Positions 38,603-62,659 of a DNA stretch of 64,000 nt are shown here, piece after piece. Positions within the stretch are counted from its first letter, which is position 1; the number at the start of each line of letters is the position of its first letter. The position numbers and the translations under genes are program-made. The stretch covers positions 1 to 64,000 of IMG/VR virus record IMGVR_UViG_3300027759_000046. One strand, 5' to 3'. Below the pieces are notes generated by a model. It ran no database searches. It worked only from the letters and a program-made list of their open reading frames with translations, and was not told where the DNA came from.

Positions 38603-38610
38603 ATAAATAA
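38603..38610 (+). promoter_or_regulatory. Late promoter motif ATAAATAA
   Basis: Immediately after the terminator and 24 nt upstream of the ATG at 38635. Confidence 0.65.
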
Positions 38611-38634
38611 CCCTAGTAAAAAAGCTATAAACTC

Positions 38635-39183
38635 ATGAGAATATTAGAATTTAAAGAATTCAGAAGACTATTATTGGAGGACGATCCTGCTCCAGCGCCA
38701 GATGCAGCAGCAGCTCCACCTCCACCGCCGCCGGCTGACCCAGCCGCAGCAATGCCACCTCCACCAATGGATATGGGCATGCCAGGCGCATTACCGCCTG
38801 ACCCAAACGCAGCACCAGCTGGTCCAACTGCTCCAACTGGCCTAAAATTCATTTTTATCCAGGATGCAGAGAATAAAAAATGGCACGGGTCTCACAACGA
38901 AGATGGCGGAACCAAAAGATTTACTCAATACGAAGTAACTCCAGACGAGCTAACTAAATGGTTAGAAGCTCACAAACTTGACAAAGATAAGGATCTAGTC
39001 TTAGCTGCATTAGCCGGAAGACGCCCAATGCCCGAAACAGTTTACTCAACTTTTAAGAAAGAGGTAATTGATGGCGATTTGGGATCTGATAAAGGAACTC
39101 TAGACATTAAATTTGATTCAGGTGATAATTTCAGCCACCCATCAACGTCTGATCTAGAAGTAGTATTTTTAAAATCTAAATAA
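38635..39183 (+). CDS. Hypothetical protein with Pro/Ala-rich linker; candidate capsid-internal protein
   Basis: N-terminus MRILEFKEFRRLLLE followed by a low-complexity PAPAPDAAAAPPPPPP segment. Confidence 0.8.
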   Translation: MRILEFKEFRRLLLEDDPAPAPDAAAAPPPPPPADPAAAMPPPPMDMGMPGALPPDPNAAPAGPTAPTGLKFIFIQDAENKKWHGSHNEDGGTKRFTQYEVTPDELTKWLEAHKLDKDKDLVLAALAGRRPMPETVYSTFKKEVIDGDLGSDKGTLDIKFDSGDNFSHPSTSDLEVVFLKSK

Positions 39184-39887
39184 TGCAAAAGTTTAAGCAT
39201 TTCATATACGAGTCAAAGTTTGATTCGTTTTCAAATATTATTGCCGAAGAGATCCTTGAGATTGTCAAAGGCAGTACTACGAGCAAACGAACAATAACCC
39301 GTGATTTGAATTACGATGAGCCGGTCTCATTCTTCTTAACCTTAAGTATTACCCGATCAAAAACATTTTCTCCAGCCAAGAGCAAGAATTTCAAGAGTCT
39401 TCCTTGGGAAACTATCAATTTTGAAAGACGCGGCTTTGTAATAGATGCAAACTCCTACATTCCAGGAAATGATGAAGAACCTGAGATTGAAATGTTTATC
39501 GTAATTAGCCCAGAGGCTGAGCCGACCTGCTATCAAACTCTATATTTTAAAATCTTAGATATTATTCGCCACGAGATGGAGCACCTACTTCAAAAAGGCG
39601 CAAACCGACAAGCAGGTCATGCTGTTACAACAAGACAAAAGACTCGCACTGCCGCTGAAGAATCTTACGAATATTTTTTGCTACCTGATGAAATTCCATC
39701 AATGGTCTCGGGTATGCATTTAGCCGCGGCAAAAAAGAGAATTCCAATCGACGCAGAATTTGAGGACTACTTATTACCATTTATTAAATCCGGTTTTATA
39801 ACTCAAGCAGAAGCGGATAAAGTTATTAGTGTATGGTTAGACTTTGCAAGAAAGCACTTTCCAAATACAAAAGTAGGAATTAATTGA
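39183..39887 (+). CDS. Zincin-like (HEXXH) protein; candidate capsid-internal protein
   Basis: IIRHEMEHLLQ with a downstream YFLLPDEI glutamate. N-terminus MQKFKHFIYES. Confidence 0.7.
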   Translation: MQKFKHFIYESKFDSFSNIIAEEILEIVKGSTTSKRTITRDLNYDEPVSFFLTLSITRSKTFSPAKSKNFKSLPWETINFERRGFVIDANSYIPGNDEEPEIEMFIVISPEAEPTCYQTLYFKILDIIRHEMEHLLQKGANRQAGHAVTTRQKTRTAAEESYEYFLLPDEIPSMVSGMHLAAAKKRIPIDAEFEDYLLPFIKSGFITQAEADKVISVWLDFARKHFPNTKVGIN

Positions 39888-39916
39888 TATTCTGAATAAT
39901 ATTTACCACATTATTT

Positions 39917-39944
39917 AAAACCGGGTGAGACTCGGTAATATAAG
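39917..39944 (+). promoter_or_regulatory. Putative phage early/middle promoter AAAACC-N16-TATAAG
   Basis: Intergenic motif upstream of the Hc1-like gene. Confidence 0.6.
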
Positions 39945-39965
39945 ATACAAAAAACTGATTAAATT

Positions 39966-40157
39966 ATGAATCCACAATGGTTAGAAGATCTTAAAGCTGC
40001 AATGAGTCAGTTAGAAGCTGAAACAAGCAAATTCTACGAAAAGGGTAACAAATCAGCAGGAACACGCGCTCGTAAATCTTTACAAGATATCAAAGCTTTG
40101 TGTCAAGCAGGTCGTACTCACATTCAAGAGTCTAAAGTTGAAGCTCCTAAAGCTTAA
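39966..40157 (+). CDS. Histone H1-like (Hc1 family) small DNA-binding protein
   Basis: KFYEKGNKSAGTRARKSL matches the KGNKAAGTRARK signature of Hc1-family proteins. Confidence 0.8.
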   Translation: MNPQWLEDLKAAMSQLEAETSKFYEKGNKSAGTRARKSLQDIKALCQAGRTHIQESKVEAPKA

Positions 40158-40181
40158 TACAAGATCACACGAATTATCATT

Positions 40182-40214
40182 AAGGGCAAAGTTTTTAAAA
40201 CTTTGCCCTTTTTT
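40182..40214 (+). terminator. Rho-independent terminator
   Basis: 14-bp inverted repeat AAGGGCAAAGTTTT/AAAACTTTGCCCTT plus a T tract. Confidence 0.8.
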
Positions 40215-40217
40215 ATT

Positions 40218-40245
40218 GAAACTCCACCAACTTTTTTAGTACAAT
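40218..40245 (+). promoter_or_regulatory. Putative phage early/middle promoter GAAACT-N16-TACAAT
   Basis: Motif directly after the terminator and upstream of the gp32-like gene. Confidence 0.65.
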
Positions 40246-40277
40246 TTATAAGTAAACATTAAAAATCATAAAGAACA

Positions 40278-41321
40278 ATGGAAGATCTATTCAATCTCAA
40301 TCCAGATGATTTCTCAGGTAAATCATCTTCTGCCGCCCGCAAGACGGACGACAACATCTACAATCCAGGCCCAGACCAAGGCCAAAATGGAATCTACAAA
40401 TCGGTAATCCGTTTTATTCCATGGGTAGGAGACCCATCAAAGAGCAAGTACAAAAAGTACGCTGCTAAATTAGTTAACCCATTAACGAATGAGCGTCTAA
40501 TCGTAGACTGTCCATCAACTAATGGAGGACCTTCAATTCTTTGGTCTCTTGACTTAGAATTGAAAAAATTAGCAAACGAAGAGCCAACTGTAGTTGAAGA
40601 AATTCGCAAGTATTTCAATCGTTACTACAATTACTACTCTTGCGTTTACATCAAGAAAGATCCTCAATTCCCAGCGAATGAAGGCAAAATCAAAGTTTAT
40701 TCTTACGGATACACTATTGACAACTTGATCCAACAAGAGATCAATCCAGAAGCAGAGTTAGTTACGACTCAGAAAATCAATCCATTCTCTTTGACGCAAG
40801 GAAAAGATTTCGTATTGGTGATCAAGCGTAAAACAAAAGCATGGAGAGATTTTAGCTCAAGCAAATTCATGAGCGAAGTAAGTCCATTAATCATCACTCA
40901 CAATGGCAAAGAAATCCCAGTATCAAATGATCCAAAAGTAATGGGATTTGTGTCTGAATATTTCAAAAAGAATTCACCAGACTTAAGTCAATACTTCTAC
41001 AAAGAATGGACAGATGCAGAATACGAAAAAGTTGCAGAGTTTATCAAAGCAATCGTTCCGTACAAGCAAATCATTGATAACTTGGTTAGCAACTTGAAAG
41101 ATGAGAAAATGAAGAAATACTTCACTAACTCTAAACCAGTTTCTCGCACAGTTGCACCGGCCGGCGAAGACTTAGAGTTTACTCCAGCTCCAGCTCAAAC
41201 CAAAAGTGCAAGCGTATCAGTTGACTTAGACATGGATTTCGATTCTACGCCAGCTCCTGCTCCAGCTAAGGCTGCTGCAAAACCGGCTGATGACTTAGAC
41301 GATCTTTTTGCAGACCTTTAA
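40278..41321 (+). CDS. gp32: Single-stranded DNA-binding protein (T4 gp32-like)
   Basis: SVIRFIPW, YYSCVYIKKDPQFPANEGKIKVYSYG, INPFSLTQGKDFVL and an acidic tail ending DDLDDLFADL. Confidence 0.88.
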   Translation: MEDLFNLNPDDFSGKSSSAARKTDDNIYNPGPDQGQNGIYKSVIRFIPWVGDPSKSKYKKYAAKLVNPLTNERLIVDCPSTNGGPSILWSLDLELKKLANEEPTVVEEIRKYFNRYYNYYSCVYIKKDPQFPANEGKIKVYSYGYTIDNLIQQEINPEAELVTTQKINPFSLTQGKDFVLVIKRKTKAWRDFSSSKFMSEVSPLIITHNGKEIPVSNDPKVMGFVSEYFKKNSPDLSQYFYKEWTDAEYEKVAEFIKAIVPYKQIIDNLVSNLKDEKMKKYFTNSKPVSRTVAPAGEDLEFTPAPAQTKSASVSVDLDMDFDSTPAPAPAKAAAKPADDLDDLFADL

Positions 41322-41336
41322 AAATAACTGAATATC

Positions 41337-41651
41337 ATGTCAGAAAACACAGAACAAATAACCGAGATTGAAGACGTTGCTCAACAAGAGGCAATCGCTG
41401 AACCGAAACCGCCAATGGCAACATTGTTAGGCTCAATCAGCTACGAGAACCATAAAGATTACGAAAATTTTCTTAATGGCTTAACTCTTGAGCACGCTGC
41501 AATCGTGCTAATCTCAGCGGCAAATTACGCTCACACAAAGGGTGCATTTTCGCTGGATGAGTCTGAGCTAATTGCGAAAGCAATCAAGCGAATGACAACG
41601 AAGCCTGAGAACGACTCAGCTTCGAATACTGAACCTCAAACTGAGCAATAA
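41337..41651 (+). CDS. Hypothetical protein (104 aa)
   Basis: ORF tightly packed between gp32 and the RNase H gene. Confidence 0.75.
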   Translation: MSENTEQITEIEDVAQQEAIAEPKPPMATLLGSISYENHKDYENFLNGLTLEHAAIVLISAANYAHTKGAFSLDESELIAKAIKRMTTKPENDSASNTEPQTEQ

Positions 41652-41653
41652 AA

Positions 41654-42766
41654 ATGAATATAGTAATCGACGGTAATGCTTTTCTAAACGTTGCGACAAG
41701 TATCGTTAAGAACATCCTCTCTGCAGATAAGCGTATCGGCGAGAAATACTATGTGTCAGATTTATTATCAGATGAAGAATTCATTCTCAAACAGGCAAGC
41801 AAAGATGCTTTTAGATCGTTCTCTCTGAATTATTTAGGAAGCATCTTTGCACCGTTTAAGGATAACATTACGTCAGTATTTTTTGTATTCGACTCTAAGA
41901 GCTGGAGAAAGAAATTTATCAAAGAACATTTTGCGGAGCACGGTGAAGGCGACTTCAGCTACAAAGGCCAACGTAAGTATGATGACAAAATCTATCTGTT
42001 TTTTGATTATTTCCAAAATGATATTCTTCCCACTCTAACTGACGAATACGGTATTCTAGCAAACCGAGTACAAGGAGCCGAGGGCGATGACCTAATTGCT
42101 TACATCTGCGAAAATCTTAAAGAAGATATCTGCATCTGGTCAGTTGATAAAGATTTAACTCAATTACTAGAGAGCCGTGACCGTAAAGTTATTCTGCTAA
42201 TGCCTAAACAGCAAACCAAATTTAAAAAGGTTTACACAACAGAAGATTTCGATTCTCAGCCAGTTCAACCGGATATTGACCTATTTAATTTTGAAATGGG
42301 ATCGATAGACAACTCAACGGTTGCAAATGTTATCAATGATCTAGTTAAAAAAGACTATCAACATTTTAAGATAGATCCAGCACTAGACGTCTTAACTAAA
42401 GTAATTGCAGGTGATCAATCTGACAATATTCCAAGATCTCATCCTAAACTAACTGCATCAAAGGTAACTAGAGTAATTGAGTTAATGAGAGAACGTGCAG
42501 ACTGGCCGTCTATTAAATATCTAATAGACCAGAATGATTCTGGGTTCATGGAAGCATTGAATGATGTAATATGTGAAGTGCTAAAGATAAGTGATTCTGG
42601 TGAAAGCCTGACGATCAGAAACAACCTAAGCCGTAATCGTACAATAATTCGATTAAGCACAGCGGTATTTCCACAGGAAATCACAGAGGCTATTGCAAAC
42701 TCCGTTAAACTTGAAAACCGTAGACGTTTTAACTATTTTAAATTTAAAAAAACATATAAGAGCTAA
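41654..42766 (+). CDS. rnh: 5'-3' exonuclease / RNase H (T4 rnh, FEN-like)
   Basis: IVIDGN, FVFDSKSWRK, YKGQRK, EGDDLIA, SVDKDLTQL and GDQSDNIP. Confidence 0.88.
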   Translation: MNIVIDGNAFLNVATSIVKNILSADKRIGEKYYVSDLLSDEEFILKQASKDAFRSFSLNYLGSIFAPFKDNITSVFFVFDSKSWRKKFIKEHFAEHGEGDFSYKGQRKYDDKIYLFFDYFQNDILPTLTDEYGILANRVQGAEGDDLIAYICENLKEDICIWSVDKDLTQLLESRDRKVILLMPKQQTKFKKVYTTEDFDSQPVQPDIDLFNFEMGSIDNSTVANVINDLVKKDYQHFKIDPALDVLTKVIAGDQSDNIPRSHPKLTASKVTRVIELMRERADWPSIKYLIDQNDSGFMEALNDVICEVLKISDSGESLTIRNNLSRNRTIIRLSTAVFPQEITEAIANSVKLENRRRFNYFKFKKTYKS

Positions 42767-43092
42767 TGAGCGAAAATAAAGAATTTACACCGTTATTCGA
42801 AAGAGTCCTAATTAAGCCGGACAGTGTCGAAACCAAAACAGAGACAGGCATCATCTTACCAGTTGAGTCCCGTAAACGTCCAAATACAGGCATTGTTATT
42901 TCGCTAGGTCACCTAGTTTCAGATAACTCAAAATGCCCAGTAAAAGAAGGCGACCGCGTTTTATACCAGAGATACTCTGGCTTAGATGTGAAAGTAAATG
43001 GCGAAGCGCATCATTTAGTTATGGCCAACGATTTAGTTGGAATTATAAATAATAATGCAAATAGCACAATTGAAATCGCAGACTATGCTTAA
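42766..43092 (+). CDS. groES: Co-chaperonin GroES
   Basis: PLFERVLIK, mobile loop KTETGIILP, VKEGDRVLY..YSG and DLVGII. Confidence 0.92.
   Translation: MSENKEFTPLFERVLIKPDSVETKTETGIILPVESRKRPNTGIVISLGHLVSDNSKCPVKEGDRVLYQRYSGLDVKVNGEAHHLVMANDLVGIINNNANSTIEIADYA
43045..43052 (+). promoter_or_regulatory. Late promoter motif (T)ATAAATAA embedded in the groES 3' end
   Basis: TATAAATAA about 33 nt upstream of the HAD-gene ATG at 43085. Confidence 0.55.
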
Positions 43093-43660
43093 GAAATTCT
43101 CACAATTCATTAATGAAAAACGCGGCGGAACTAAACAGATCTTCTGTGATCTAGACGGAGTTATCGTTGATTTCAATCGAGGTTTTAAAAACATTGAAGC
43201 AAACGACGATAAGCTGACTCCTGAAAAATACAATGACAAGCACGGTAAGCATTCCATGTGGAAAATTGTAGATCCGGAAGGCGAAAAGTTTTGGGCAAGA
43301 TTAAAGTGGATGAAAGATGGTAGAGAGTTATGGGATTACCTATCTCAATATGACCCAATCATTCTGTCTTCACCTAGTCGTAGCAAACACTCAATTCCAG
43401 GTAAAATGGAATGGATTAAGAGAAATCTTGGAATAAATCAAGCCAAACCAACTACATCAGCATCAGATTGGGATCCAGCTAGTCGAATCATCTTAAGTTC
43501 AGACAAATTCAAATTTGCAAGATCCAAAGACGATATCCTAATTGACGATACTCGTGCTAAGTTGGACAAATGGACAGCCGCTGGTGGAACAGGTATATTC
43601 CACAACGATGCAACTGATACAATTCGAGTTCTCGAGGAAATCTTTACGAAAAACGATTAA
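43085..43660 (+). CDS. HAD-superfamily 5'(3')-deoxyribonucleotidase-like protein
   Basis: IFCDLDGVIVDF (motif I), ILSSP, K..W and ILIDD (motif IV). Start moved from 43055 to ATG 43085 (MLKKFSQFINE), overlapping the groES stop. Confidence 0.85.
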   Translation: MLKKFSQFINEKRGGTKQIFCDLDGVIVDFNRGFKNIEANDDKLTPEKYNDKHGKHSMWKIVDPEGEKFWARLKWMKDGRELWDYLSQYDPIILSSPSRSKHSIPGKMEWIKRNLGINQAKPTTSASDWDPASRIILSSDKFKFARSKDDILIDDTRAKLDKWTAAGGTGIFHNDATDTIRVLEEIFTKND

Positions 43661-43718
43661 AAAGTTCTTGGACTTAAACCAAGTGGTGGATCTCTGACCA
43701 ATTCCGGTCGGCCCTAAC

Positions 43719-43750
43719 AAAAAAAGGACTCTTTCGAGTCCTTTTTTTTT
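43719..43750. terminator. Bidirectional Rho-independent terminator
   Basis: A7-GGACTC-TTTC-GAGTCC-T9 between convergent genes. Confidence 0.88.
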
Positions 43751-43781
43751 GTCTTAATTCAAACCGTTAAAAAGCAAGAGT

Positions 43782-43943
43782 TTACTTATTTTTAACGATT
43801 GACCAAATACCGCCTGCTAGTGTTAAAACCGCACCAGTTAGTTCAGCATTTAAAGCGTCTGTAAGAATGCCTCTCATAATGAGAATACCGCCAACAAAGG
43901 TAAGTGTGTGTCTAACGATTCCTAGAAATTGTTCTTTTGTCAT
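43782..43943 (-). CDS. Small two-TM membrane protein, putative holin (53 aa)
   Basis: Missing from the ORF track. Hand translation: MTKEQFLGIVRHTLTFVGGILIMRGILTDALNAELTGAVLTLAGGIWSIVKNK, with two hydrophobic helices and a basic C-terminus. Confidence 0.75.
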   Translation of the reverse strand: MTKEQFLGIVRHTLTFVGGILIMRGILTDALNAELTGAVLTLAGGIWSIVKNK

Positions 43944-44000
43944 GTTTTTGTTGTTTTTTTTATTACAAAGGCCCTGTTAAGCTGAGTCCTAATTTTTTTC

Positions 44001-47033: not shown

Positions 47034-47058
47034 CGCGTGCTATTGTTATTTTTTAAAG

Positions 47059-47070
47059 TTATTTATTTAT
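47059..47070 (-). promoter_or_regulatory. Overlapping late promoter motifs ATAAATAAATAA
   Basis: Upstream of the sheath ATG at 47033. A further copy lies at 47123-47130. Confidence 0.65.
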
Positions 47071-47201
47071 CAATCTATTCCCAAAATTGAGCTATTTTAA
47101 GTCTAGTTTGCTATTGCTAGAGTTATTTATCAGCAACCAAGGTGCTAAACTTAAACCCTTTTTCATTTATCGAATAAAAGAAACTATAAAACTGTACAAA
47201 T

Positions 47202-47686: not shown

Positions 47687-48049
47687 ATGACACTATTAAT
47701 TGAACAGCTCAATACAGCTTTGGGGTATCCAGGGCGTATGATATCCGGTAGTAAAAGCGGTTACCGTGACCGTCATCCAGATAACTTTGCAATTTTTAAC
47801 TCAAATATCTGCACAGAGTCCGGCAAAGTCTGGTTCGGCGATATTGATTTAACCTTGCAAAAAGAAGCTCTTTGCGAATTAGCGAAGGCTCATAATGAAA
47901 CAATATACGTCCTATATGAAATGGACGCGCGTTTTGAAAACGAGGAAACTCCTCTATTGGGAAAAGCCCCAATCAAATTTTTACCAGATGGCACGTTTAA
48001 AGTTGCCGATCGTTTAGTACAATATATTTCTAAATCCTTTTTTGAATGA
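47687..48049 (+). CDS. Hypothetical protein (120 aa)
   Basis: ORF overlapping the polymerase start by 4 nt (ATGA). Confidence 0.75.
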   Translation: MTLLIEQLNTALGYPGRMISGSKSGYRDRHPDNFAIFNSNICTESGKVWFGDIDLTLQKEALCELAKAHNETIYVLYEMDARFENEETPLLGKAPIKFLPDGTFKVADRLVQYISKSFFE

Positions 48050-49437
48050 TAGTAAGCACAGAATTTAATAGTGACGACTCTACGTTAGTCATCTCGTATT
48101 ATGACGAGACTGGCAATATTGCGTTTGTAAAAAAACCAATCCAACAAACCGATCTTTTTAACTGGGCAACTACTCCAACTCCAACTGAGTTTAGAAATTG
48201 GGATAATCGCTTTCTTAAAAAGGCTCCAAACAAGTGGTTAAGTCGTTTTCGTCTTGAGGAGTTAACTCAAAGCCGTTTACACCAATCTGAACTTGATCTA
48301 ATCTATTCAGACCTTAGCCCCAAGAAATACTATCTCGATATTGAGATTCAATTGACTTCACAAGATTTCCCAGATCCAGCAAAAGCCTTGATGCCAGTTA
48401 ACTTAATTACGTTTGTTAACGAAGATAACGTGTGTTTCATTATGTCAACCATGAAAGACTTAGCACCAGACGTAATGCAACAAATGGAATTAGAGGTAAA
48501 TGATTACTTTAAAGCCCATAAACAAACATTCACGTTAAAATACTTGTTCTTTGAGAAAGAAGAAGATTTAATGGCAACATTTTTTCATAAAGTCCTTCCG
48601 AAAATTCCATTCTTAACTGGCTGGAACGTAATAGGATTTGACTGGATTTATCTTATTAATCGCTGCAAGCGTTTAAATATTGATCCAATGGAAACTATGC
48701 CATGTAAAAAAATGATTGGTCAAGCAAAAATGCCAATTCACTTAGGTCTTCTCGATTACATGGAAGTTTTCATGAATACTAAGCCATACAAAGTTGTTGA
48801 GAATTATAAACTAGACTACATTGCAAATCTAGTGTTAGGTACCACTAAATTGCATAGTGAATACGCAACTATGATGGAAGCTCAGCAAGATATTGAGAAT
48901 TTCGTTAAGTATAACGTGATTGATACGATTCTAGTCAAACTTCTTGAAGATAAACTTGGTCTACTTGACGTAGCTTTTGCGATTTCAAAATTTGCGAAGG
49001 TTGACGTATCTAAAGTATTCTCAGCAGTATTCATCACTGAAGCCTTAATGTGCCGTGAATTCTTAGAGCGTGGCCGTTACATGGCAAATGATAAACGTGA
49101 TATTGAGAGCGAAGCGACATACGATGGAGCATTCGTTGCAAAACCTGATCCAGGCTATTACAAGTACGTTTCATGTTTTGACTTTGCGTCCATGTATCCA
49201 AATATCCAAATCCAGTTTAATATTTCGCCAGATGCTTACATGGGTAAAAAGAAATCAGATTCTCAACTTACTCCTGAAACTATCTTAACTAAGAACGATA
49301 CAATATTTACCAAGAAATTCGATTCAGCCGCTCGAACTATATTAACTCGATTGTATAATGGTCGTGTCGATACGAAAAACGAAATGAAAAAACTAGAAGA
49401 ACAACTTCAAAGTGAAAAAACTACTAAAAATACTTAA
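48046..49437 (+). CDS. gp43: Family-B DNA polymerase, N-terminal subunit only (exonuclease + motif A)
   Basis: YLDIE (ExoI), GWNVIGFDW (ExoII), YKLDYIA..YNVIDT (ExoIII) and CFDFASMYPNIQIQFNISPD (motif A). Stops at TAA in the fingers helix; no KxxxNSxYG or YGDTDS motif. Confidence 0.85.
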   Translation: MIVSTEFNSDDSTLVISYYDETGNIAFVKKPIQQTDLFNWATTPTPTEFRNWDNRFLKKAPNKWLSRFRLEELTQSRLHQSELDLIYSDLSPKKYYLDIEIQLTSQDFPDPAKALMPVNLITFVNEDNVCFIMSTMKDLAPDVMQQMELEVNDYFKAHKQTFTLKYLFFEKEEDLMATFFHKVLPKIPFLTGWNVIGFDWIYLINRCKRLNIDPMETMPCKKMIGQAKMPIHLGLLDYMEVFMNTKPYKVVENYKLDYIANLVLGTTKLHSEYATMMEAQQDIENFVKYNVIDTILVKLLEDKLGLLDVAFAISKFAKVDVSKVFSAVFITEALMCREFLERGRYMANDKRDIESEATYDGAFVAKPDPGYYKYVSCFDFASMYPNIQIQFNISPDAYMGKKKSDSQLTPETILTKNDTIFTKKFDSAARTILTRLYNGRVDTKNEMKKLEEQLQSEKTTKNT

Positions 49438-53802: not shown

Positions 53803-53817
53803 AAAAACCTAAACGTT

Positions 53818-54471
53818 TTGGCAAAAAGAAAAAAAGAAGAACTGTTCGAAGATCTAGGATTTGAAGAACAAGATGATTTATCATACGAATCGGGGTTTGA
53901 CGATATTAGTGTAGTCGATGAGACTGATGGAGAAGATCCAGTTGAGCTTGAAAGACGTCGTACTGAATATGCTCGACTTAGAAAAAATGATAAGATTTTT
54001 AATAACTCATACAATATGGGTCAAAACTTATCAGAAGAAGACGAGGGCGAAGCCCGATCTCATTCGGAAATTAAATTAGATTCAAGCTCACCAGACTACC
54101 ATCTATACGATCGAGACCAATACTCAGATCACATTGACAACAAGATAACTCAATACGATATAGATCAATTCGTATCAGTATCTACTGACATCCAGGCGAT
54201 CCTAGGTGATCAACCTGATAAGCGTAAATTTACAAAGCCTGAGATAAATGAACTGTTCCAATTAATAACAGTTGGCGTAAGCAAAGGCGAAGATACAAGC
54301 GTATTCGTTAGTCCAATCCATATTCTTGATGCAATCTCGTCTTTGACCTGCATGGAATATAAGAAATTGTTTGACATGTTAACTTACGAACACAAGGAGA
54401 TTCTTCTATTGGAACTAAACAAGAAATACGGCTTTCTAGACAAGCCCTCCAAAAACCTTAAAATGTTTTAA
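53818..54471 (+). CDS. Acidic hypothetical protein (217 aa)
   Basis: TTG start; ORF fills the helicase-gp47 gap. Confidence 0.75.
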   Translation: MAKRKKEELFEDLGFEEQDDLSYESGFDDISVVDETDGEDPVELERRRTEYARLRKNDKIFNNSYNMGQNLSEEDEGEARSHSEIKLDSSSPDYHLYDRDQYSDHIDNKITQYDIDQFVSVSTDIQAILGDQPDKRKFTKPEINELFQLITVGVSKGEDTSVFVSPIHILDAISSLTCMEYKKLFDMLTYEHKEILLLELNKKYGFLDKPSKNLKMF

Positions 54472-54474
54472 TTA

Positions 54475-55590: not shown

Positions 55591-56071
55591 TCCATCAATT
55601 AGTAAATACGTTCGAATTATTGAAATGAATCGGGAATTTAAAGCGATTGCTGCAATGGATGTTCCGGAAAACACAATAATTGAAATTTGCCCAGTTCTAA
55701 TTAGTAGCGCTAAAGCAATCATGTCATTAACTAATTCAGATTCTAAACTTGCAAGCAAAATCATAATTGACGAGGCTGCCATTGACAGGGAATATCAAGT
55801 GTTTGCTGAGCTTGGTGAAATGGAATTGGAAAGAAGGCTTGATTCAGGCCAAATTACACCAGCTGAGTATACTCAAATACTAAGATCTAAGGTCAACATA
55901 AACTCTCTACTAAATGCTAAAACTCACGGTCTGCCATTAGGAAACGGATTAATTTATGGAATAAGTGATTTTCCAAATATGGTCAGAGAATATCATTCAA
56001 GTAGTAAACTTTGCGTGTTTAGATCAGTACAATACATAATAGAAGGCAGTGAACTAACTTACTCCAAATAA
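55583..56071 (+). CDS. Degenerate SET-domain-like protein
   Basis: KAIAAMDVPENTIIEICPVL...LPLGNGLIYGISDFPN...VFRSVQYIIEGSELTY follows the bacterial SET pattern (VFA.RDI..GEIIE.CPV...LALGYGSLYNHS..PN...F.A.RDI..GEEIT.NY), but NHS is replaced by GIS. Confidence 0.55.
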   Translation: MPNPSISKYVRIIEMNREFKAIAAMDVPENTIIEICPVLISSAKAIMSLTNSDSKLASKIIIDEAAIDREYQVFAELGEMELERRLDSGQITPAEYTQILRSKVNINSLLNAKTHGLPLGNGLIYGISDFPNMVREYHSSSKLCVFRSVQYIIEGSELTYSK

Positions 56072-56077
56072 TATTAA

Positions 56078-57751
56078 ATGAAGATAACTCAATTCTCTTT
56101 TAAGAACATTTGTTCTTATGGCAATAAATTACAGACTTTTAAATTCTCAGAAGATCCTCAATTAGTATTGGTTCAGGGTAAGAATGGCAGCGGTAAATCT
56201 TCAATTTCCGATGCTCTAACTGTTGCACTATATGGCAAATCATCAATTCGTAAAACAAAAGAGATTCCAAATCGAATCAATAAAAATGCATACACGCATG
56301 TAGAGTTTTTAACCGGATCCGGCGATACGATTGAAATTGAAAGAGGCCTAGAGCCTAACTTTTCAAAATTATTAATCAATGGAACTGAGCATAATTTGCC
56401 AGATAAACGCCGAGTAGACGATTTTATCGAAGAAGAACTTACAAAGATCCCATTCAACGTATTCTCAAACACAATCAGTCTATCAGTTAATGATTTCAAG
56501 AGCTTTGTTAAGTTAAGCCCTCATGACAAGCGCCAAATTATTGATAAAATCTTTGGTTTAGATATTGTAAATGACATGTCTAAAATTGCCAAGGAAGAAG
56601 TTCGTGAATTAAAAGTATCAATACAAACAATTGACTCAACTGTTCTTAATAATGAAGCTCTGCTCCAAAATTCACAAGATCAGCTAACGAATCTTAAGCA
56701 AGATCTATCGTCGGCTAAAGATTCTAGGATTTTAGAGTTAACAACCGAAATTTCTGAGCTAAATAAAACTAAAGAGATTTATAAAGCCGAATACACAGGC
56801 TTTCAAGCCGAGTTAAAGAAATTAGAATCAGCAGTAACAGACGCTAGAGAAAAGAAGTCAAATATTCAATTAACTATTTCTGAAATTCAGAAAAAACTTG
56901 ACCTGTACTCCAAGAATAAGTGTCCACACTGTCTATCTGATCTTACTGACGCTGCACATTTAGGCATAAAGGATAAGCTAGTTGCTAAGAAACAGGAGCA
57001 AACTGACCTGATTCCAACTGCTAACTCTCAAATTACTGAAGCGAATCAATTACTTGAAGATCTAAAGGCTGCTCAAAGTTCTGCTCGAGATAAATTTTAT
57101 CAAGTGGATGGAGTTCTTGCTCCGCTAAAGAAAGAACTTTCTGAACTAAATGATACACCTGAGTCGACTGATAAGAAGTCTGGCACAACATACATAAATG
57201 GAGTAATTTCAAATATTGAATCTGAGATTTCAAAATTATCAGAAGAAAGAGCTAAATTAAGTTCACAATTATCAATTTCTCAAGAGATGGAAGACATTCT
57301 ATCAGATAATGGAATGAAGCGTGTTCTAATGAGTCAAATTATTCCAATGCTAAATAAGAAAATCTTGAAGACTTCAAAGCTTCTTGAATTTAAGTTTGCA
57401 TTTGAATTTGATTTAGAATTTAATCCAATAATTACTCACTTAGGAATGCAAATTTCTCCAGACTCGTTATCTGCTGGAGAACAAAAGAAGATGAACTTAA
57501 TCGTTCTATTGTGTATTTTGGAGCTCTTAAAATTAAAACATCACAAGGTTAATCTATTATTCCTAGATGAAGTATTCTCATCATTAGATGTTGAATCAAT
57601 CTATAGAGTAGTTGACCTATTGAAAACTTTTGCAAAAAAGTACAACATGACAGTATTCGTAATCTCTCATGATCCTTTACCTGAGGAGTTTTTCGACACA
57701 AAGTTAATGGTTGAAAACACCGACCACTTCTCAGACATCAAGTTCTTGTAA
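56078..57751 (+). CDS. gp46: Recombination ATPase, Rad50/SbcC-like (T4 gp46)
   Basis: GKNGSGKS, coiled coil with CPHC zinc hook, LSAGEQKK signature, LFLDE and ISH. Confidence 0.93.
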   Translation: MKITQFSFKNICSYGNKLQTFKFSEDPQLVLVQGKNGSGKSSISDALTVALYGKSSIRKTKEIPNRINKNAYTHVEFLTGSGDTIEIERGLEPNFSKLLINGTEHNLPDKRRVDDFIEEELTKIPFNVFSNTISLSVNDFKSFVKLSPHDKRQIIDKIFGLDIVNDMSKIAKEEVRELKVSIQTIDSTVLNNEALLQNSQDQLTNLKQDLSSAKDSRILELTTEISELNKTKEIYKAEYTGFQAELKKLESAVTDAREKKSNIQLTISEIQKKLDLYSKNKCPHCLSDLTDAAHLGIKDKLVAKKQEQTDLIPTANSQITEANQLLEDLKAAQSSARDKFYQVDGVLAPLKKELSELNDTPESTDKKSGTTYINGVISNIESEISKLSEERAKLSSQLSISQEMEDILSDNGMKRVLMSQIIPMLNKKILKTSKLLEFKFAFEFDLEFNPIITHLGMQISPDSLSAGEQKKMNLIVLLCILELLKLKHHKVNLLFLDEVFSSLDVESIYRVVDLLKTFAKKYNMTVFVISHDPLPEEFFDTKLMVENTDHFSDIKFL

Positions 57752-57776
57752 ACTATTCACGTTTTTTTAGTATATT
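57749..57776 (+). promoter_or_regulatory. Putative phage early/middle promoter TAAACT-N16-TATATT
   Basis: Motif spans the gp46 stop and the short intergenic region before the gp42-like gene. Confidence 0.55.
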
Positions 57777-57782
57777 TTATTT

Positions 57783-58664
57783 ATGATAGTATTTAAAGGC
57801 CAGACTTTTGCCGAGTGTTACCGTGACTCGCTAATCAATCTTTTCGAAGATGGTATTGAAAATAATGCCAGAGGCACCGTGAGCAAGGAGTTGCTTGACG
57901 TTGCGTTAGTTGTCGAAGATCCAACTCAATGCCTATATCAAAACGATAGGCGAGGTTCTCAAAAGAAGTATATTGCGGCTGAATTTTTGTGGTATTACTC
58001 AGGGCGTAATGACGTTAAGTTTATTGCGAATTGGGCTAAGTTTTGGGAATCAATCCAAAACGAAGACGGTTCAGCTAACTCAGCTTACGGCAACCTAATC
58101 TTTAAGGTTAGAAATCAGCACAATCTCTCCCAATACCAGTGGGCAATGCAAAGCTTAATCAGCGATCCTAACACGAGACAAGCTGTAATGCATTTCAATA
58201 TGCCGACTCACCAGTACAATGGAAACAAGGATTTTGTTTGTACAATGTACGCAAACTGCCATATCCGAAACAATAAGTTCTATATGTCAGTTTACATGAG
58301 AAGCAATGACGCTGTTTGGGGTACACCAACTGACGTAGCTTTCTTCTGTTCTTTACAGATGCAAATGTATTCTCAATTAAAAAACTTCTATCCAGAGTTA
58401 GAGCTTGGTTCGTATACTCACGTTGCAAATTCATACCACGTTTACGATAGACATTATGAATTAGGAACAGCAATGCTAGAGACAGCATTCAAACCAGAAG
58501 CACTTCCACACGTTGTCGCAGATCTAGTCGATATCGATGGAGAGCCTAGCCGTAATTTATTAATCTTAATGGATGCGTTATTTGCAAACGATGAGCCGTA
58601 TCTAATTTTTCAAGATGGTCCAGATATGTTAAAATGGATTCATACAAATGTTTCAAAGAAATAA
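57783..58664 (+). CDS. gp42: Thymidylate-synthase-superfamily enzyme, most like dCMP hydroxymethylase (T4 gp42)
   Basis: NSAYG, DPNTRQA, DFVCT (catalytic Cys), MRSNDAVWGTPTD and SYHVYDRH align with T4 gp42 (NSNYG, NPDSRRG, DFMCT, MRSNDVVFGFRND, SLHVYSRH). Asp sits where dUMP-specific ThyA has Asn. Confidence 0.75.
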   Translation: MIVFKGQTFAECYRDSLINLFEDGIENNARGTVSKELLDVALVVEDPTQCLYQNDRRGSQKKYIAAEFLWYYSGRNDVKFIANWAKFWESIQNEDGSANSAYGNLIFKVRNQHNLSQYQWAMQSLISDPNTRQAVMHFNMPTHQYNGNKDFVCTMYANCHIRNNKFYMSVYMRSNDAVWGTPTDVAFFCSLQMQMYSQLKNFYPELELGSYTHVANSYHVYDRHYELGTAMLETAFKPEALPHVVADLVDIDGEPSRNLLILMDALFANDEPYLIFQDGPDMLKWIHTNVSKK

Positions 58665-58666
58665 TC

Positions 58667-59122
58667 ATGACGCCAAAGCAACATAAAATAGACCTCGCTT
58701 ACATTAAGATGGCCCAAGTCTGGGCAGATCTATCTCATGCCACTCGTAAAAAAGTTGGAGCTCTAATTGTTAAAAATAACACAATCATCTCTGATGGGTT
58801 CAACGGAACTCCGTCTGGTTTTGAAAATGAATGTGAAGAAGCTATCCATAATGAAGACGGTTCATTTAAAGAATATAAAACCAAATGGTATGTTTTACAT
58901 GCCGAATCAAATGCATTAGCTAAAGTTGCCAAATCAACACAAAGTAGCGATGGCGCAACCCTCTATATTACATATTCCCCATGCACAGATTGTAGTAAAT
59001 TAATTCTACAGGCTGGTATTAAACGCGTTGTTTACTTGGAAGAGTATCGTGATACAAACGGCTTGGACTTTTTACGAAGAGCCGGTGTTGAGGTTAAAAA
59101 AATCAACATACAAAATGATTGA
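58667..59122 (+). CDS. cd: dCMP deaminase
   Basis: KVGALIVK, GFNGTPSG, HAESNAL and SPCTDC zinc motifs. Start moved from 58634 to ATG 58667, just after the upstream stop. Confidence 0.93.
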   Translation: MTPKQHKIDLAYIKMAQVWADLSHATRKKVGALIVKNNTIISDGFNGTPSGFENECEEAIHNEDGSFKEYKTKWYVLHAESNALAKVAKSTQSSDGATLYITYSPCTDCSKLILQAGIKRVVYLEEYRDTNGLDFLRRAGVEVKKINIQND

Positions 59123-59516
59123 TACTACAAATCGCGTACTTGAAATAGTCTTCGTTAAAGATCTAAAACAATTCGTTCAAGTCCTGCACAAAAAATGCAA
59201 ATCCGACTATCTTTTAAATGTCAATAAGATAATTAGGGAGAAATTTGAACAAGATATTCTTGTACCAAATAAAATTCAATCTTTCTTAATTAATTACGAA
59301 ATCAAGAAATTAATTGATAAAGCAGTCAATGTTAGAAACCGCAAATACAGTCGAATAATCTACGTTAACTCAAGTCTGTCAAAGAATACTGTGTTAAACA
59401 CAATCGACTTTCTATCGAATGCTTATGAAGAGGTTAAATTTGAACCTCTAATAATTGATTTAGAAGAGGACTTTTGCACAGAGCTAAAGATTAAAACAAT
59501 AAAAAAGGGACGATAA
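59115..59516 (+). CDS. Hypothetical protein (about 133 aa)
   Basis: ATG 59115 overlaps the deaminase stop; the longer 59028 start is unlikely. Confidence 0.7.
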   Translation: MIDTTNRVLEIVFVKDLKQFVQVLHKKCKSDYLLNVNKIIREKFEQDILVPNKIQSFLINYEIKKLIDKAVNVRNRKYSRIIYVNSSLSKNTVLNTIDFLSNAYEEVKFEPLIIDLEEDFCTELKIKTIKKGR

Positions 59517-59526
59517 ACGTCCCTTT
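59501..59526. terminator. Terminator hairpin between convergent genes
   Basis: AAAGGGACG-ATAAA-CGTCCCTTT, with an A tract on the left giving a U tract on the minus strand. Confidence 0.75.
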
Positions 59527-59551
59527 CTAGTATTCAATAAGTTTTAAAAGA

Positions 59552-60157
59552 TTAAGCTCCTTCTTCAGTATTCTCTTCTTCACCTTCTTCGCCTTCTTCC
59601 TCTTCTTTGCACATTTTTTCAATTGCTGCACATAATAGGTCGCAAACTTCTTCTTTTTCGATTTCCATTTTCTCGCAAATGTCATCAATTAAATCTTGAA
59701 GATCGTCTCCGAATTCTTCCATTAATTTTTCCAATTGCTCCTCGTCTACTTCGTATCCAAGGTCTACATTTTCATCATCTTCTAAAGGTTCTTCAGCTTC
59801 GTTAAATTCATAGTTTTCATTTACGAATTCTTGGTATCTTGCGATCTTTCCTTCTTCAACTGCATCAGTTGTTGCGATAGTTGGTTTAGCGTACATTTGT
59901 GTATAAGGTTTTTTCTTTGCTGTTTTATAAACGATATCGCTGGAAAATCCTTTCCAAGCAGAATCATAATTTGGGTTGAATCGGCCTCCTTCAGCATTAG
60001 GATCGCGCTCAACAACTCTTTGATATCCATCTAGAGATTTTCTCTTTGATTTATCGAAATCTTCTTTTTCAGAAGGACCACCGAACGCAGGTTTCTTTGG
60101 GTTTGTCCATCTTTCTAGAGAAGGATTATCTCTGCGTTTTACGTTAAACATGTCCAT
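59552..60157 (-). CDS. Hypothetical protein with basic N-terminal half and very acidic C-terminal half; candidate head-core protein
   Basis: Contains KIARYQEFVNE followed by E/D-rich helices. Confidence 0.78.
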   Translation of the reverse strand: MDMFNVKRRDNPSLERWTNPKKPAFGGPSEKEDFDKSKRKSLDGYQRVVERDPNAEGGRFNPNYDSAWKGFSSDIVYKTAKKKPYTQMYAKPTIATTDAVEEGKIARYQEFVNENYEFNEAEEPLEDDENVDLGYEVDEEQLEKLMEEFGDDLQDLIDDICEKMEIEKEEVCDLLCAAIEKMCKEEEEGEEGEEENTEEGA

Positions 60158-60174
60158 GTCTTACTTTAGTATTT

Positions 60175-60777
60175 TTATTGACCAATACGAGTTTCAACGT
60201 AACGATCCGCTACGAATCCAATTGTAAGATCGGCAATTTTATCGTCTGCATAACTTAAGGTTTGCTCTGTAAATTTCTCAGTATCTATGAAAACTGGAGA
60301 GAAAACAAACTCTCTAAAGATTACACCAGAACGGTTGAATTGAGTTACTTGAATTACTGCTGGACTAGCAACAGTACCTGCGTAATCTTTTTTCAATCCT
60401 TGCGCACCAGTCATTGGATCATAGATCAAATTAGACCAAGCGCGGAATGCGTTATAAATGTAATTATCGTTATCGTCATTTAAGTTCAATTCAAATGCAA
60501 TCTTGAATTTAGCTAACGTTGTTGTAGGTTTAGCAGCAGCGTAAGCTCTTTCAGAGAATTTGAATCTCTGTGTTTGCAAAGCACCACCGGCGTTACCGTG
60601 AAGTTCTGGAAGTCCAGTAACCGTCTTAACGTGTTCTAGAGTTAGATTATTGTTAAATCCAATTTTTGCAGAGACAGCAGGTGGAGGCGTAATAATTACT
60701 TCAAACTGATTTAAGTAAATCGGTTCATATCTTCCTGGACCTGCGGTTGAGTTTTTAAAATGTGGTAGACCAGCCAT
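60175..60777 (-). CDS. gp19: Tail tube protein (T4 gp19-like)
   Basis: EPIYLNQFEV, FRAWSNLIYDPMTG..GLKKDYAG, VTQFNRSG..REF and LSY..LTIGFVADRY. Late motif at 60797-60804. Confidence 0.85.
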   Translation of the reverse strand: MAGLPHFKNSTAGPGRYEPIYLNQFEVIITPPPAVSAKIGFNNNLTLEHVKTVTGLPELHGNAGGALQTQRFKFSERAYAAAKPTTTLAKFKIAFELNLNDDNDNYIYNAFRAWSNLIYDPMTGAQGLKKDYAGTVASPAVIQVTQFNRSGVIFREFVFSPVFIDTEKFTEQTLSYADDKIADLTIGFVADRYVETRIGQ

Positions 60778-60796
60778 CTTGTCTTATTTTTTTAAT

Positions 60797-60804
60797 TTAT
60801 TTAT
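60797..60804 (-). promoter_or_regulatory. Late promoter motif ATAAATAA
   Basis: Exact motif about 20 nt upstream of the tail-tube ATG. Confidence 0.65.
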
Positions 60805-60820
60805 TCGAGAGTTTCGCAGT

Positions 60821-61726
60821 TTATCGCGGACCGACCGGAGTTGGGTCAGCTTTTTTGTTAACCTCATTCTTAATTTCGGTGAATTCGCGCTCCTTTGCGC
60901 CGGAACCCTTTAAGCTTTTAAGTGCTTTAAACACCCAGTCTTCGTCTTCTGCATCCTTTCCTTTTGGAACAACTGAATTTTCGCCAACGGTAAATGATAA
61001 TTCAATCGAAGGCAATACTTCAGCTAAGAGATTCTTTTGAACTCCACCGCCTTCGCCTTCAACTGTAAAATCTGAATAACTGAATTCAATTGTGTCTCCC
61101 ATAATACCGCCAAATTTAACTATTGCTTTAATTTTGCTAGAGTTGTCAAGATTTTCATCTCCGACCATCTTAGTTATATTATTGGTTGCACGATACTGAA
61201 TAGTTACTCCGCTTCCGCCTTTTTCCTGAACATCAATGAATCTCATTCTATCAGCAATCACATGAACAGAATAACTTCCATTAAATGCAGGAGTCTTCTC
61301 TGGATCCTTAGGCTCATCTTTCTTTGGCTCGTCATTAGTTATCTCATCTTCAGGTTCTAGTGAATCCTGATCATCCTGAGTTTTATCTATGACAGCTGGC
61401 AGTCCAGGCTTTTGGAAAACTGCTGGTAAATTCTTATCATTACCGGCAGGCAATGCTAGAGTTTCGTTTGTCTTCTTTGTTAGCTTAGAATCAATTACTG
61501 CATTAATCTCTTTAAGTAGATTAATTAACTTATCGGCGCTTGTGTACTTGTAATAAGTTGCAAGAGCAGAAGCCTTTGTAAACAATAAGTCCGGATAAAT
61601 GTCAGTAGTATGCAGTTCAATATCTTGAGCATTCTGATCCCAATGAGGCTGTCCGCCGTTTCCGGGATTGGTCCACTTAATATTAAAGCTTATGTATGAC
61701 TCTGCAATTACGCCGTTTCCTATCAT
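60821..61726 (-). CDS. Hypothetical protein (301 aa)
   Basis: ORF in the late operon between the capsid and tube genes. Confidence 0.78.
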   Translation of the reverse strand: MIGNGVIAESYISFNIKWTNPGNGGQPHWDQNAQDIELHTTDIYPDLLFTKASALATYYKYTSADKLINLLKEINAVIDSKLTKKTNETLALPAGNDKNLPAVFQKPGLPAVIDKTQDDQDSLEPEDEITNDEPKKDEPKDPEKTPAFNGSYSVHVIADRMRFIDVQEKGGSGVTIQYRATNNITKMVGDENLDNSSKIKAIVKFGGIMGDTIEFSYSDFTVEGEGGGVQKNLLAEVLPSIELSFTVGENSVVPKGKDAEDEDWVFKALKSLKGSGAKEREFTEIKNEVNKKADPTPVGPR

Positions 61727-61729
61727 TTA

Positions 61730-62233
61730 TTAGCCGATTTCTTTATCTCCGCGGAATTCTTTTCCACGATTTGCTTTTTTCTTATCTGGATCAACTGTTT
61801 TATAGTTAGCCCAAATTTCGTTGTAAATACGGCAAGATGCTCCCATGAAATTAACGATACCTACATATTTCTTGCGATCATCACCTTTCATTTTTGAAAT
61901 CTTCTTACCGATTGAACGAGCATCATCTAAATCAAGTTCTTCCTCGTCAGATTTTCCAACCAAGTCCTTAAGCGAATTTGCTTCGTACATATACGATTCA
62001 AACGTTGGATGCACGTGTGGTCCTCGTGGGCCCATTGGATCCAGGTCAATATCTTCTGATTCAATATCAGCAGATCCACCCATTCTTTTTATTTGAGCAA
62101 GGCCTTCTTCCTGAGAGTTTACTGGAATCAAAGTGTTTTGACCAACTACATAGTAGCCGTCTTCGCGCTCTTCAATTCTCAATGGTCCAGACAGATCGAA
62201 TTCCATGCCATCACTAAATTTAAGTTTTGACAT
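61730..62233 (-). CDS. Hypothetical protein (167 aa)
   Basis: ORF in the late operon; internal PTFESYMYEA motif. Confidence 0.75.
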   Translation of the reverse strand: MSKLKFSDGMEFDLSGPLRIEEREDGYYVVGQNTLIPVNSQEEGLAQIKRMGGSADIESEDIDLDPMGPRGPHVHPTFESYMYEANSLKDLVGKSDEEELDLDDARSIGKKISKMKGDDRKKYVGIVNFMGASCRIYNEIWANYKTVDPDKKKANRGKEFRGDKEIG

Positions 62234-62244
62234 AGTTAACTGAT

Positions 62245-62604
62245 TTATTTAGGCATCTTTGCCATAGCTGGATCAACTTTCTTGTTGATAGCTTTACCTT
62301 TGATAACAAGCTTAGAGATCTTAGGATCAACTTCTTTCTTAGAAGCAGTTCCACGACCCTTAGGCATATCGGCCATTTCAGGTTTCACCATTTTATTAGA
62401 AGCAGAACCACGACCCTTAGGCATATCAGCCATTTCAGGTTTTACAGTTTTACTGATTGCTCTACCTTTTCCAACAGGAAGTGCAGACATCTCATCATCA
62501 ACTTGTTTTGTAATTCTTTTGCCTTTAGCTGGAGCGCCTTTAGCAAGATCTTGATTCGTTTTCTTTTCAAAAAGATACTCTTCGTAGCTTAAAACTGATT
62601 TCAT
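62245..62604 (-). CDS. Small basic repeat protein; candidate capsid-internal DNA-binding protein
   Basis: N-terminus MKSVLSYEEYLFE, then Lys-rich repeats of about 19 aa (VKPEMADMPKGRG twice, with degenerate flanks). Confidence 0.78.
   Translation of the reverse strand: MKSVLSYEEYLFEKKTNQDLAKGAPAKGKRITKQVDDEMSALPVGKGRAISKTVKPEMADMPKGRGSASNKMVKPEMADMPKGRGTASKKEVDPKISKLVIKGKAINKKVDPAMAKMPK
62341..62443. repeat. 57-bp-period coding tandem repeat
   Basis: AGAAGCAG..CCACGACCCTTAGGCATATC.GCCATTTCAGGTTT starting at 62341 and 62398. Confidence 0.85.
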
Positions 62605-62651
62605 GTGAATTTTGTTTTTTTGTAATTTCTTTTTTGCTAATCCTAGCTAGG

Positions 62652-62659
62652 TTATTTAT
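62652..62659 (-). promoter_or_regulatory. Late promoter motif ATAAATAA
   Basis: Just downstream of the capsid terminator and upstream of the ATG at 62604. Confidence 0.65.

Follow-up and report, generated by a model that had tools for sequence, protein, structure and literature searches.

Probable T4-type capsid-targeting leaders on unrelated late proteins of an uncultured freshwater phage

The closest described counterpart of the system treated here is found in phage T4, whose internal proteins and capsid targeting sequence were reportedly characterized by Mullaney and Black in 1996. T4 Alt, an ADP-ribosyltransferase, is packaged in the head and injected, and its N-terminal propeptide is cleaved off. 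In encapsulins, a short terminal cargo-loading peptide is enough to bring various enzymes into a shell of the HK97 fold. What the capsids of uncultured jumbo and huge phages carry is, to our knowledge, known to nobody. Here, we analyzed a stretch of 64,000 nucleotides (nt; the window), comprising positions 1–64,000 of a 253,137-bp viral genome record from a freshwater lake metagenome (IMGVR_UViG_3300027759_000046 = JGI Ga0209296_1000013), in which several genes with late-promoter-like motifs encode proteins that start with peptides resembling the T4 leader.

In IPIII of T4, residues 4 and 7 of the leader serve targeting, residues 8 and 10 serve processing, and the protease gp21 cuts after L/I-x-E (PMC9026906). 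The injected T4 proteins are first-line tools against the defenses of the host, IPI acting against GmrSD and IPIII being required on some hosts (bioRxiv 10.1101/2022.04.14.488369). In phiKZ-like giant phages (201phi2-1, phiKZ, and SPN3US), a distant relative of gp21 processes numerous proteins inside the head by cutting after Glu, and these are ejected into the host (PMC9026906). Judged by its genes, the genome studied here is that of a distant T4-like myovirus. The window encodes ribonucleotide reductase, gp32, UvsX, a gp41-like helicase, gp46/47, thymidylate synthase, and dCMP deaminase, and the structural and late-expression genes include those for the tail sheath, the tail tube, a gp23-family capsid protein, and a gp55-like late sigma factor. 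A megablast search with a 7.4-kb query returned no close relatives of the window among GenBank phages. The nearest GenBank relatives of the head protease are found in the uncultured huge phages LR756500-504 (33% identity) and in the Lak phages of Prevotella. These relationships, together with the near-absence of Shine-Dalgarno sequences at gene starts across the window, suggest a Bacteroidota host. For comparisons, approximately 70 related contigs were collected via gp32 and approximately 20 via the protease.

Four proteins in the window begin at Met1 with a leader of about 10 to 15 residues (hereafter, the tag): MRILEFKEFRRLLLE (gene at 38635, plus strand), MQKFKHFIYE (39183, plus strand), MLKKFSQFINE (43085, plus strand), and MKSVLSYEEYLFE (62604, minus strand). 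All four contain an aromatic pair three residues apart, equivalent to residues 4 and 7 of IPIII, and end in a processing site of the type [L/I/V]-x-E (IYE, INE, LFE, and LLE). The likeness is most directly seen by setting MKTYQEFIAE, the start of T4 IPII and IPIII, beside the leaders at 39183 and 43085. The leader at 38635 is a longer variant, in which F-x-x-F is followed by a longer spacer and then LLE; distant orthologues of this protein have a canonical MLKNFxxWLxE. Two more proteins carry the motif internally, namely KIARYQEFVNE at residues 104–114 of the product of 59552–60157 and FESYMYE in the product of 61730–62233, both on the minus strand. All six peptides had been quoted in an earlier reading made from the letters of the window (the sequence-only reading), and each is present where that reading had placed it. 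The mature tagged proteins are mutually unrelated, and those of the window show no homology to the T4 IPI, IPII, or IPIII families in PHROG and Pfam searches; an Atlas match of the 38635 domain to "IpIV" scored 0.50, which is chance level.

Because the motif of the sequence-only reading was loose and post hoc, it was re-defined from T4 mutagenesis data as aromatic-x-x-aromatic-[ILV]-x-E with its start among the first 10 residues, and re-tested on sequence outside what that reading had covered. In the window, [FY]xx[FY][ILVM]xE, a near-identical pattern, occurs seven times in 20.6k residues against 2.5 expected, and its matches within the first 10 residues number three against 0.055 expected (0 of 2000 shuffles). 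The strict pattern misses the variant leader at 38635. As a control, the T4-derived pattern was applied to T4 itself, where it matches just ipII and ipIII among 173 open reading frames in 70 kb. A scan of 132 of the 253 kb of the present genome, containing 136 genes, gave nine strict tags, compared with 0.22 expected and a maximum of four in 1000 shuffles. The observation is real and far above chance.

Five further tagged genes are located between 64 and 132 kb. They encode proteins of 204, 212, 261, 192, and 88 residues, which start with MAIIKRYTQWLNE, MQLIKGYKQWLNE, MVKTFSQFITE, MKNLKGFTDFISE, and MNHVKSFTTFITE, respectively, and for which PHROG and Pfam searches returned no matches. Each of these genes lies directly behind an ATAAATA motif or in an operon behind one; a sixth case is doubtful. 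In all, at least eight or nine unrelated, putatively late proteins of this genome carry the tag. In the whole 462-kb genome of LR756500.1, 20 genes start with MK[YF]I..Y.[ED]F[LIV].E, against 1.27 expected (maximum of six in 300 shuffles). Several of them are clustered. Among the encoded proteins are three with leucine-rich repeats and one putative DUF2201 metallopeptidase bearing a VWA domain. Within the 42 kb surrounding the head genes of LR756500, no N-terminal tag was found; the tags emerged only when the whole genome was scanned.

The sequence-only reading had placed all four N-terminal cases behind a late motif or in its operon, which agrees with the motif positions listed in Table 1. 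ATAAATA is found 20 to 33 nt upstream of the sheath gene (motif at 47059–47070), the tube gene, several baseplate-region genes, and the genes at 38635 and 43085, and 48 nt upstream of the gene at 62245–62604. The sheath and tube motifs serve as a positive control that ATAAATA marks structural genes, and the motif is likely read by the gp55-like sigma factor. Over the 132 kb, tags and late motifs co-occur: five of the nine tagged genes have an ATAAATA motif of their own, compared with 16 of the 127 untagged genes (Fisher p = 0.005), and three further tagged genes lie in operons behind such a motif. Early genes do not carry the tag at a similar frequency, with none found on the approximately 29 early or replication genes in the window. 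ATAAATA is also kept upstream of orthologues of 38635 (36/36, plus 18/18 in a distant clade) and, in 18 of 22 cases, upstream of orthologues of the gene following the capsid gene. At the motif level, these data suggest that the tagged genes are expressed late.

Orthologues of all four tagged genes in the window keep the leader despite overall identities of 35 to 60%. The consensus leaders are M-L-K-K-F-x-Q-F-[IVL]-x-E in the nucleotidase family (43085), M-I-K-R-F-x-x-F-I-[YF]-E-S in the HExxH family (39183), and V-L-[SN]-Y-x-x-[YF]-L-x-E-K in the post-capsid family (62245). In the nucleotidase and post-capsid families, the aromatic pair and the Glu are invariant and the residues in between vary freely. 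Nearly all of the 120 best nucleotidase homologues have this leader or a close variant of it, followed by a linker that varies in length and sequence and by an invariant DxDGV.

The same leader is found on other proteins. Searching all viral contigs for DNA that would encode M-[LF]-K-K-F-x-x-F-[IV]-x-E gave 45 sites, comprising 27 nucleotidase orthologues, about 15 starts of unrelated proteins on other contigs of 120 to 340 kb, and three junk sites, the number expected by chance. In another T4-like phage, the leader MLKKFNQFIHE precedes a PF03496 ADP-ribosyltransferase (E-value 2.8e-21; L113:7642–8511, minus strand), the gene for which directly follows, and is translationally coupled to, the portal gene. 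The head module of that phage has the T4 order: sheath, tube, portal, ADP-ribosyltransferase, gp67-like, gp21-like, scaffold, and gp23. This enzyme is a counterpart of T4 Alt; like Alt, which is packaged and injected, it would be an enzyme carried in the head by means of a short cleaved leader. The Alt leader differs in being aliphatic instead of aromatic (MELITELFDE), and the tagged ADP-ribosyltransferase gene lies outside the window and the part of the genome studied here.

The machinery that would act on such leaders is encoded at the end of the window and just beyond it. The complete capsid protein has 559 residues, matches PF07068 (E-value 2.5e-42), and is 26% identical to T4 gp23. The gene directly upstream of it, 429 nt beyond the window end, encodes a 660-residue protease-scaffold protein, the N-terminal 170 residues of which match Peptidase_S77 (PF03420, the T4 gp21 family) with 33 bits against a cutoff of 27. 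The catalytic residues of T4 gp21 are His85 and Ser140 (PMC12991175); they align with H84 (GELDH84P) and S139 (TS139SR), which are invariant in eight relatives. The protease also scores on Peptidase_S80, the phiKZ gp175 type, a feature shared with the phiKZ-like phages; the propeptides of those phages, in contrast, are long and have a minimal x-x-E logo, without a stereotyped 10-residue address label.

Residues 286–439 of the protease-scaffold protein consist of eleven perfect 14-residue repeats, K-x-I-x-Y-x-x-Y-[LIV]-[AG]-E-x-[VL]-x. Each repeat holds a core of the form aromatic-x-x-aromatic-[LIV]-[AG]-E, with four positions common to the tags, and the last one reads IAYSEYIAE, which is near to KTYQEFIAE of the T4 leader. 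The presumed main substrate of the protease hence carries the core of the tags. The array is kept repeat by repeat in relatives, and the 462-kb LR756500 holds a similar array of about a dozen less regular 14-residue repeats (L138:19968–21866). T4 gp21 and the gp22/gp67/gp68 core offer a parallel: the protease there shows the S77 fold signature together with the catalytic His and Ser, and the scaffold contains many [IL]-x-E sites and is cut to small peptides. The difference is that protease and scaffold are here part of one 660-residue polypeptide with eleven regular repeats resembling the capsid targeting sequence.

Taking these data together, we consider it probable that the peptides are T4-type capsid-targeting and cleavage leaders. 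As for the T4 IPs (reviewed in PMC9026906 and PMC3012670), there is a Met1 leader of about 10 residues with aromatics at positions 4 and 7, I or L at position 8, and Glu at position 10. Further likenesses are that the leader sits on unrelated, fast-evolving proteins, that a gp21-family protease is present, that expression appears to be late, and that small basic cargo is represented, by the 119-residue protein. Unlike in T4, the predicted cargo includes enzymes, at least eight to nine tagged genes are found in half a genome compared with three in T4, and the tagged genes are scattered, some of them lying amid replication genes in late cassettes bracketed by terminators. The candidate cargo encoded in the window comprises a HAD nucleotidase, the HExxH protein and its operon partner, and a basic repeat protein.

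The leader may be described as a short N-terminal amphipathic segment in which two aromatics three residues apart are followed by [ILV]-x-E. Late in infection, tagged proteins would be made and would join the scaffold core via this segment, and the shell would close around the core and the tagged proteins. The protease would then cut after Glu in scaffold repeats and leaders alike, upon which the scaffold peptides would exit, whereas the mature cargo would remain with the DNA and enter the next host. We infer packaging, scaffold binding, cleavage after Glu, head retention, and injection by analogy with T4, and we are less certain about injection than about targeting. Encapsulin cargo-loading peptides differ from such leaders: they are mostly located at the C-terminus, attach to the shell itself, and stay uncleaved, and neither DNA nor delivery to another cell is involved.

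A bolder idea, which we put forward tentatively, is that the leader is a free-standing copy of a scaffold repeat, so that the cargo would co-assemble as a mimic of the scaffold. The same code would then span T4 to the largest phages, and the number of cargo proteins would increase with genome size (three in T4, at least nine here, and at least 20 in the 462-kb phage). No co-variation between tags and scaffold repeats was seen when it was looked for across clades; in a distant clade, the tags have F-x-x-W and the scaffold has Y-x-x-Y.

The mechanism itself is already known; the novelty lies in the lineage, in how many and which kinds of proteins are tagged, in the protease-fused repeat scaffold, and in the reach into huge phages. 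We found no literature on such tags outside the T-even phages, in a collection that was incomplete, so that their undescribed status is unproven. If the T4 label holds in these lineages, a scan of N-termini would provide a list of candidate packaged effectors directly from sequence. For the present genome, this list so far contains the nucleotidase, the HExxH protein, basic repeat proteins, and numerous proteins that have no known relatives; elsewhere, it contains an ADP-ribosyltransferase, a metallopeptidase-VWA protein, and leucine-rich-repeat proteins. If the mimicry or address-code idea is true, the injected first-response effectors of uncultured phages could be read from metagenomes. Such a scan would also supply a tag for loading foreign proteins into the capsids of non-model phages. 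The protease-fused repeat scaffold suggests a mode of tag recognition, a matter that is unsettled even in T4.

The leaders could also be cleavable propeptides only, whose removal by the protease switches enzymes on or destroys them late in infection, with no carriage in the head and no injection. The co-existence of an [ILV]-x-E site and an S77 protease fits this, as does the plain processing-site appearance of the internal motifs in the 59552 and 61730 proteins, and timed control is plausible for a nucleotidase that, when free, could harm the deoxynucleoside monophosphate pool of the phage. However, the tagged ADP-ribosyltransferase parallels the packaged Alt, the most conserved residues of the leaders are the aromatic ones, which in T4 serve targeting and not cleavage, and T4 gp21 works inside the prohead, to which the same leader delivers its substrates (PMC9026906). 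We consider this alternative unlikely. Another option, that the leader is an oligomerization interface or a docking helix for a non-capsid partner such as a chaperone, is in our view quite improbable. An amphipathic helix is predicted for the leader, and the phage encodes GroEL, GroES, DnaJ, and a ClpB-like ATPase, but docking would leave unexplained the invariant Glu two residues past the aliphatic residue, the grammar of the T4 capsid targeting sequence, the presence of the core in the scaffold repeats, and the association with late promoters.

Shuffles that keep composition yielded 0.22 tags where nine are observed in this genome and 1.27 where 20 are observed in LR756500.1, and the leaders are kept over approximately 50% sequence divergence. 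These numbers make it very improbable that the peptides are an artifact of Lys/Phe-rich N-termini in an AT-rich genome or of miscalled starts, even though the motif was initially loose, one tagged match (L158:2985–3233) has no late context and could be a chance hit, and the start at 43055 was ambiguous until orthologues fixed the start at 43085. An element acting at the RNA level, in translation initiation or mRNA stability, might likewise have produced conserved 5′ ends, which here are A/T-rich in genes without Shine-Dalgarno sequences. At the invariant residues, synonymous codons are mixed (TTT/TTC 9:7 and 7:9 in the nucleotidase family; GAA/GAG 11:5), with both codons comparably used in two of three families and a stronger codon bias in the HExxH family. 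Neighboring codons change amino acid freely, and the peptide is additionally found at internal positions and within the repeats of the scaffold. Invariant residues with mixed synonymous codons speak for selection on the peptide and effectively rule out the RNA explanation, which we regard as hardly credible.

Several observations weigh against capsid targeting as interpreted here. The support is at the level of sequence, and the tag scan took in only 52% of the genome. Neither a position-specific scoring matrix nor a hidden Markov model derived solely from the scaffold repeats placed the leaders near the top; the flanking positions differ. The likeness between tag and scaffold consequently rests on the four core positions, and mimicry is kept as a hypothesis. 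The AlphaFold model of the protease-scaffold protein is of low confidence (predicted local distance difference test, pLDDT, 46) and supports "helical repeats" only. In its most distant clade, the HExxH protein is without the leader. The nucleotidase gene can also be reached by read-through from the GroES gene, and just 10 of 38 orthologues retain its late motif. Nor is it obvious what a nucleotidase would do in the capsid. The core of the sequence-only interpretation, a shared T4-like leader on dispersed late genes, nevertheless passed every sequence test that was applied, whereas two of its functional labels were only partly backed, as described below.

Table 1. Positions of the tagged genes, their flanking elements, and related features. 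Coordinates are those of the window unless marked as genome positions.
Feature	Coordinates	Strand	Remarks
gp55-like late sigma factor	25444..25887	-	phrog_234, E-value 2e-17
Intrinsic terminator	38575..38597	+	10-pair stem and T run; closes ribonucleotide reductase operon
ATAAATAA late-promoter-like motif	38603..38610	+	25 nt before ATG of 38635
182-residue candidate cargo	38635..39183	+	Variant leader at residues 1-15 (F6/F9, L-L-E15), linker, conserved C-terminal domain
234-residue HExxH protein	39183..39887	+	Canonical leader MQKFKHFIYE; F4/F7/I8/E10 at the T4 IPIII positions
Hc1 histone H1-like protein	39966..40157	+	PF07432, E-value 1.9e-17; third cassette gene, no leader
Intrinsic terminator	40182..40210	+	Ends late cassette ahead of gp32 gene
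ATAAATAA late motif	43045..43052	+	33 nt before ATG 43085
191-residue HAD-type 5'(3')-deoxyribonucleotidase-like enzyme	43085..43660	+	phrog_2643, E-value 4e-24; MLKKFSQFINE, variable linker, DxDGV core
Intrinsic terminator	43719..43748	+	3' of nucleotidase gene
201-residue protein	59552..60157	-	Internal YQEFVNE, residues 108-114, window 59816-59836
ATAAATAA	60797..60804	-	20 nt before tail tube gene (60175-60777)
167-residue protein	61730..62233	-	Internal FESYMYE, residues 78-84, window 61982-62002
119-residue protein, directly downstream of capsid gene	62245..62604	-	Leader MKSVLSYEEYLFE; Lys-rich, repetitive basic body
ATAAATAA late motif	62652..62659	-	48 nt before ATG 62604
T4 gp23-family major capsid protein	62731..64000	-	Gene continues 410 nt past window end
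Protease-scaffold gene, 660 residues	genome 64429-66411 (L001:6194-8176)		Directly upstream of capsid gene

Two of the tagged genes lie in a self-contained late cassette amid early genes (38603–40210), in which the late motif, the genes at 38635 and 39183, and the Hc1 gene are bracketed by terminators; the upstream terminator shields the cassette from early transcription. The linker of the 38635 protein is Pro/Ala-rich and hypervariable. This protein has no Pfam or PHROG matches, and an Atlas search with its C-terminal domain stayed at chance level and was uninformative. The start of 39183 overlaps the stop codon of 38635, and the two genes are translationally coupled. In the most distant clade, 38635 is tagged and its HExxH partner is not, which hints that the pair may travel together. 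The HExxH family is viral-only, with the invariant residues R129-H130-E131-x-x-H134 and H146. The sequence-only reading had called this protein a zincin; the invariant HExxH and H146 agree with that label, whereas the confident model (pLDDT 90) gave no match at E < 0.001 in a PDB fold search. The Hc1 histone-like protein could condense or accompany packaged DNA.

The claim of a nucleotidase among the tagged proteins was borne out by the PHROG match in Table 1 and by an intact nucleophile motif, FCDLDGV. A Pfam search gave no match at an E-value of 0.01, so that the substrate assignment is putative. An alternative start at ATG 43055, which sits two bases past the late motif, was rejected, because the extension is not conserved and several orthologues begin at MLKKF, MIKKF, or MFKKF. 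The 119-residue protein would have 106 residues and an isoelectric point (pI) of 10.3 after the predicted cut and resembles an internal protein; that it binds DNA is a guess. The label "DNA-binding proteins" given to part of the cargo is only suggested by the very basic, repetitive nature of this protein, whereas the clear DNA-binding member of the cassette, the Hc1-like protein, is untagged.

Of the proteins with internal motifs, that of 61730 has the motif conserved directly ahead of a highly conserved C-terminal domain, and three relatives start the protein approximately 10 residues before the motif. In the 59552 protein, a candidate prohead-core protein, the motif is located at the junction of a basic N-terminal domain (pI 9.2) and an acidic C-terminal domain (pI 4.1) and is kept in seven of seven relatives. 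Two internal canonical motifs each are present in a 983-residue RNA-ligase-domain protein (L151:6800–9751) and a 354-residue late protein (L156:14133–15197), which are possible multiply processed head proteins.

Two other proteins in the window have starts that recall T4 propeptides. A 1211-residue protein (14732–18367, minus strand) starts with MADKTTLADYLAE, which resembles the T4 Alt leader and is conserved in relatives; it was left out of the tagged set, since its entire N-terminus is conserved and the conservation is hence not tag-specific. A 301-residue protein (60821–61726, minus strand), whose gene separates the tagged genes from that of the tail tube, begins with MIGNGVIAE-S. This start is kept as [IV]-[AVC]-E in relatives and could represent a short propeptide of the [IV]-x-E type, as in T4 gp24.

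The chaperone set of the phage consists of GroEL and GroES (window 27555–29135 and 42766–43092, both plus strand), a DnaJ-domain protein (L001:5249–6127), whose gene lies immediately upstream of that for the protease-scaffold protein, and a ClpB-like AAA+ ATPase (L156:17707–19683). Two small genes on the opposite strand, whose products have N-termini resembling those of signal peptides or lipoproteins, are interspersed among tagged late genes at about 79–81 kb of the genome (L149:5171–5614 and L149:6416–6820, both minus strand). A 47-codon open reading frame between early genes (window 35001–35144, plus strand) has ATAAATAA 6 nt upstream, which could point either to a late promoter serving the small subunit gene of the reductase or to a genuine small gene. 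Finally, the family-B DNA polymerase is apparently split: a 463-residue polymerase-like N-terminal part (48046–49437, plus strand) and a 3′-5′ exonuclease (26797–27540, plus strand) are encoded in the window, and a 485-residue DNA_pol_B piece (L154:8477–9934) lies approximately 45 kb away, beside a TnsA-like endonuclease gene.

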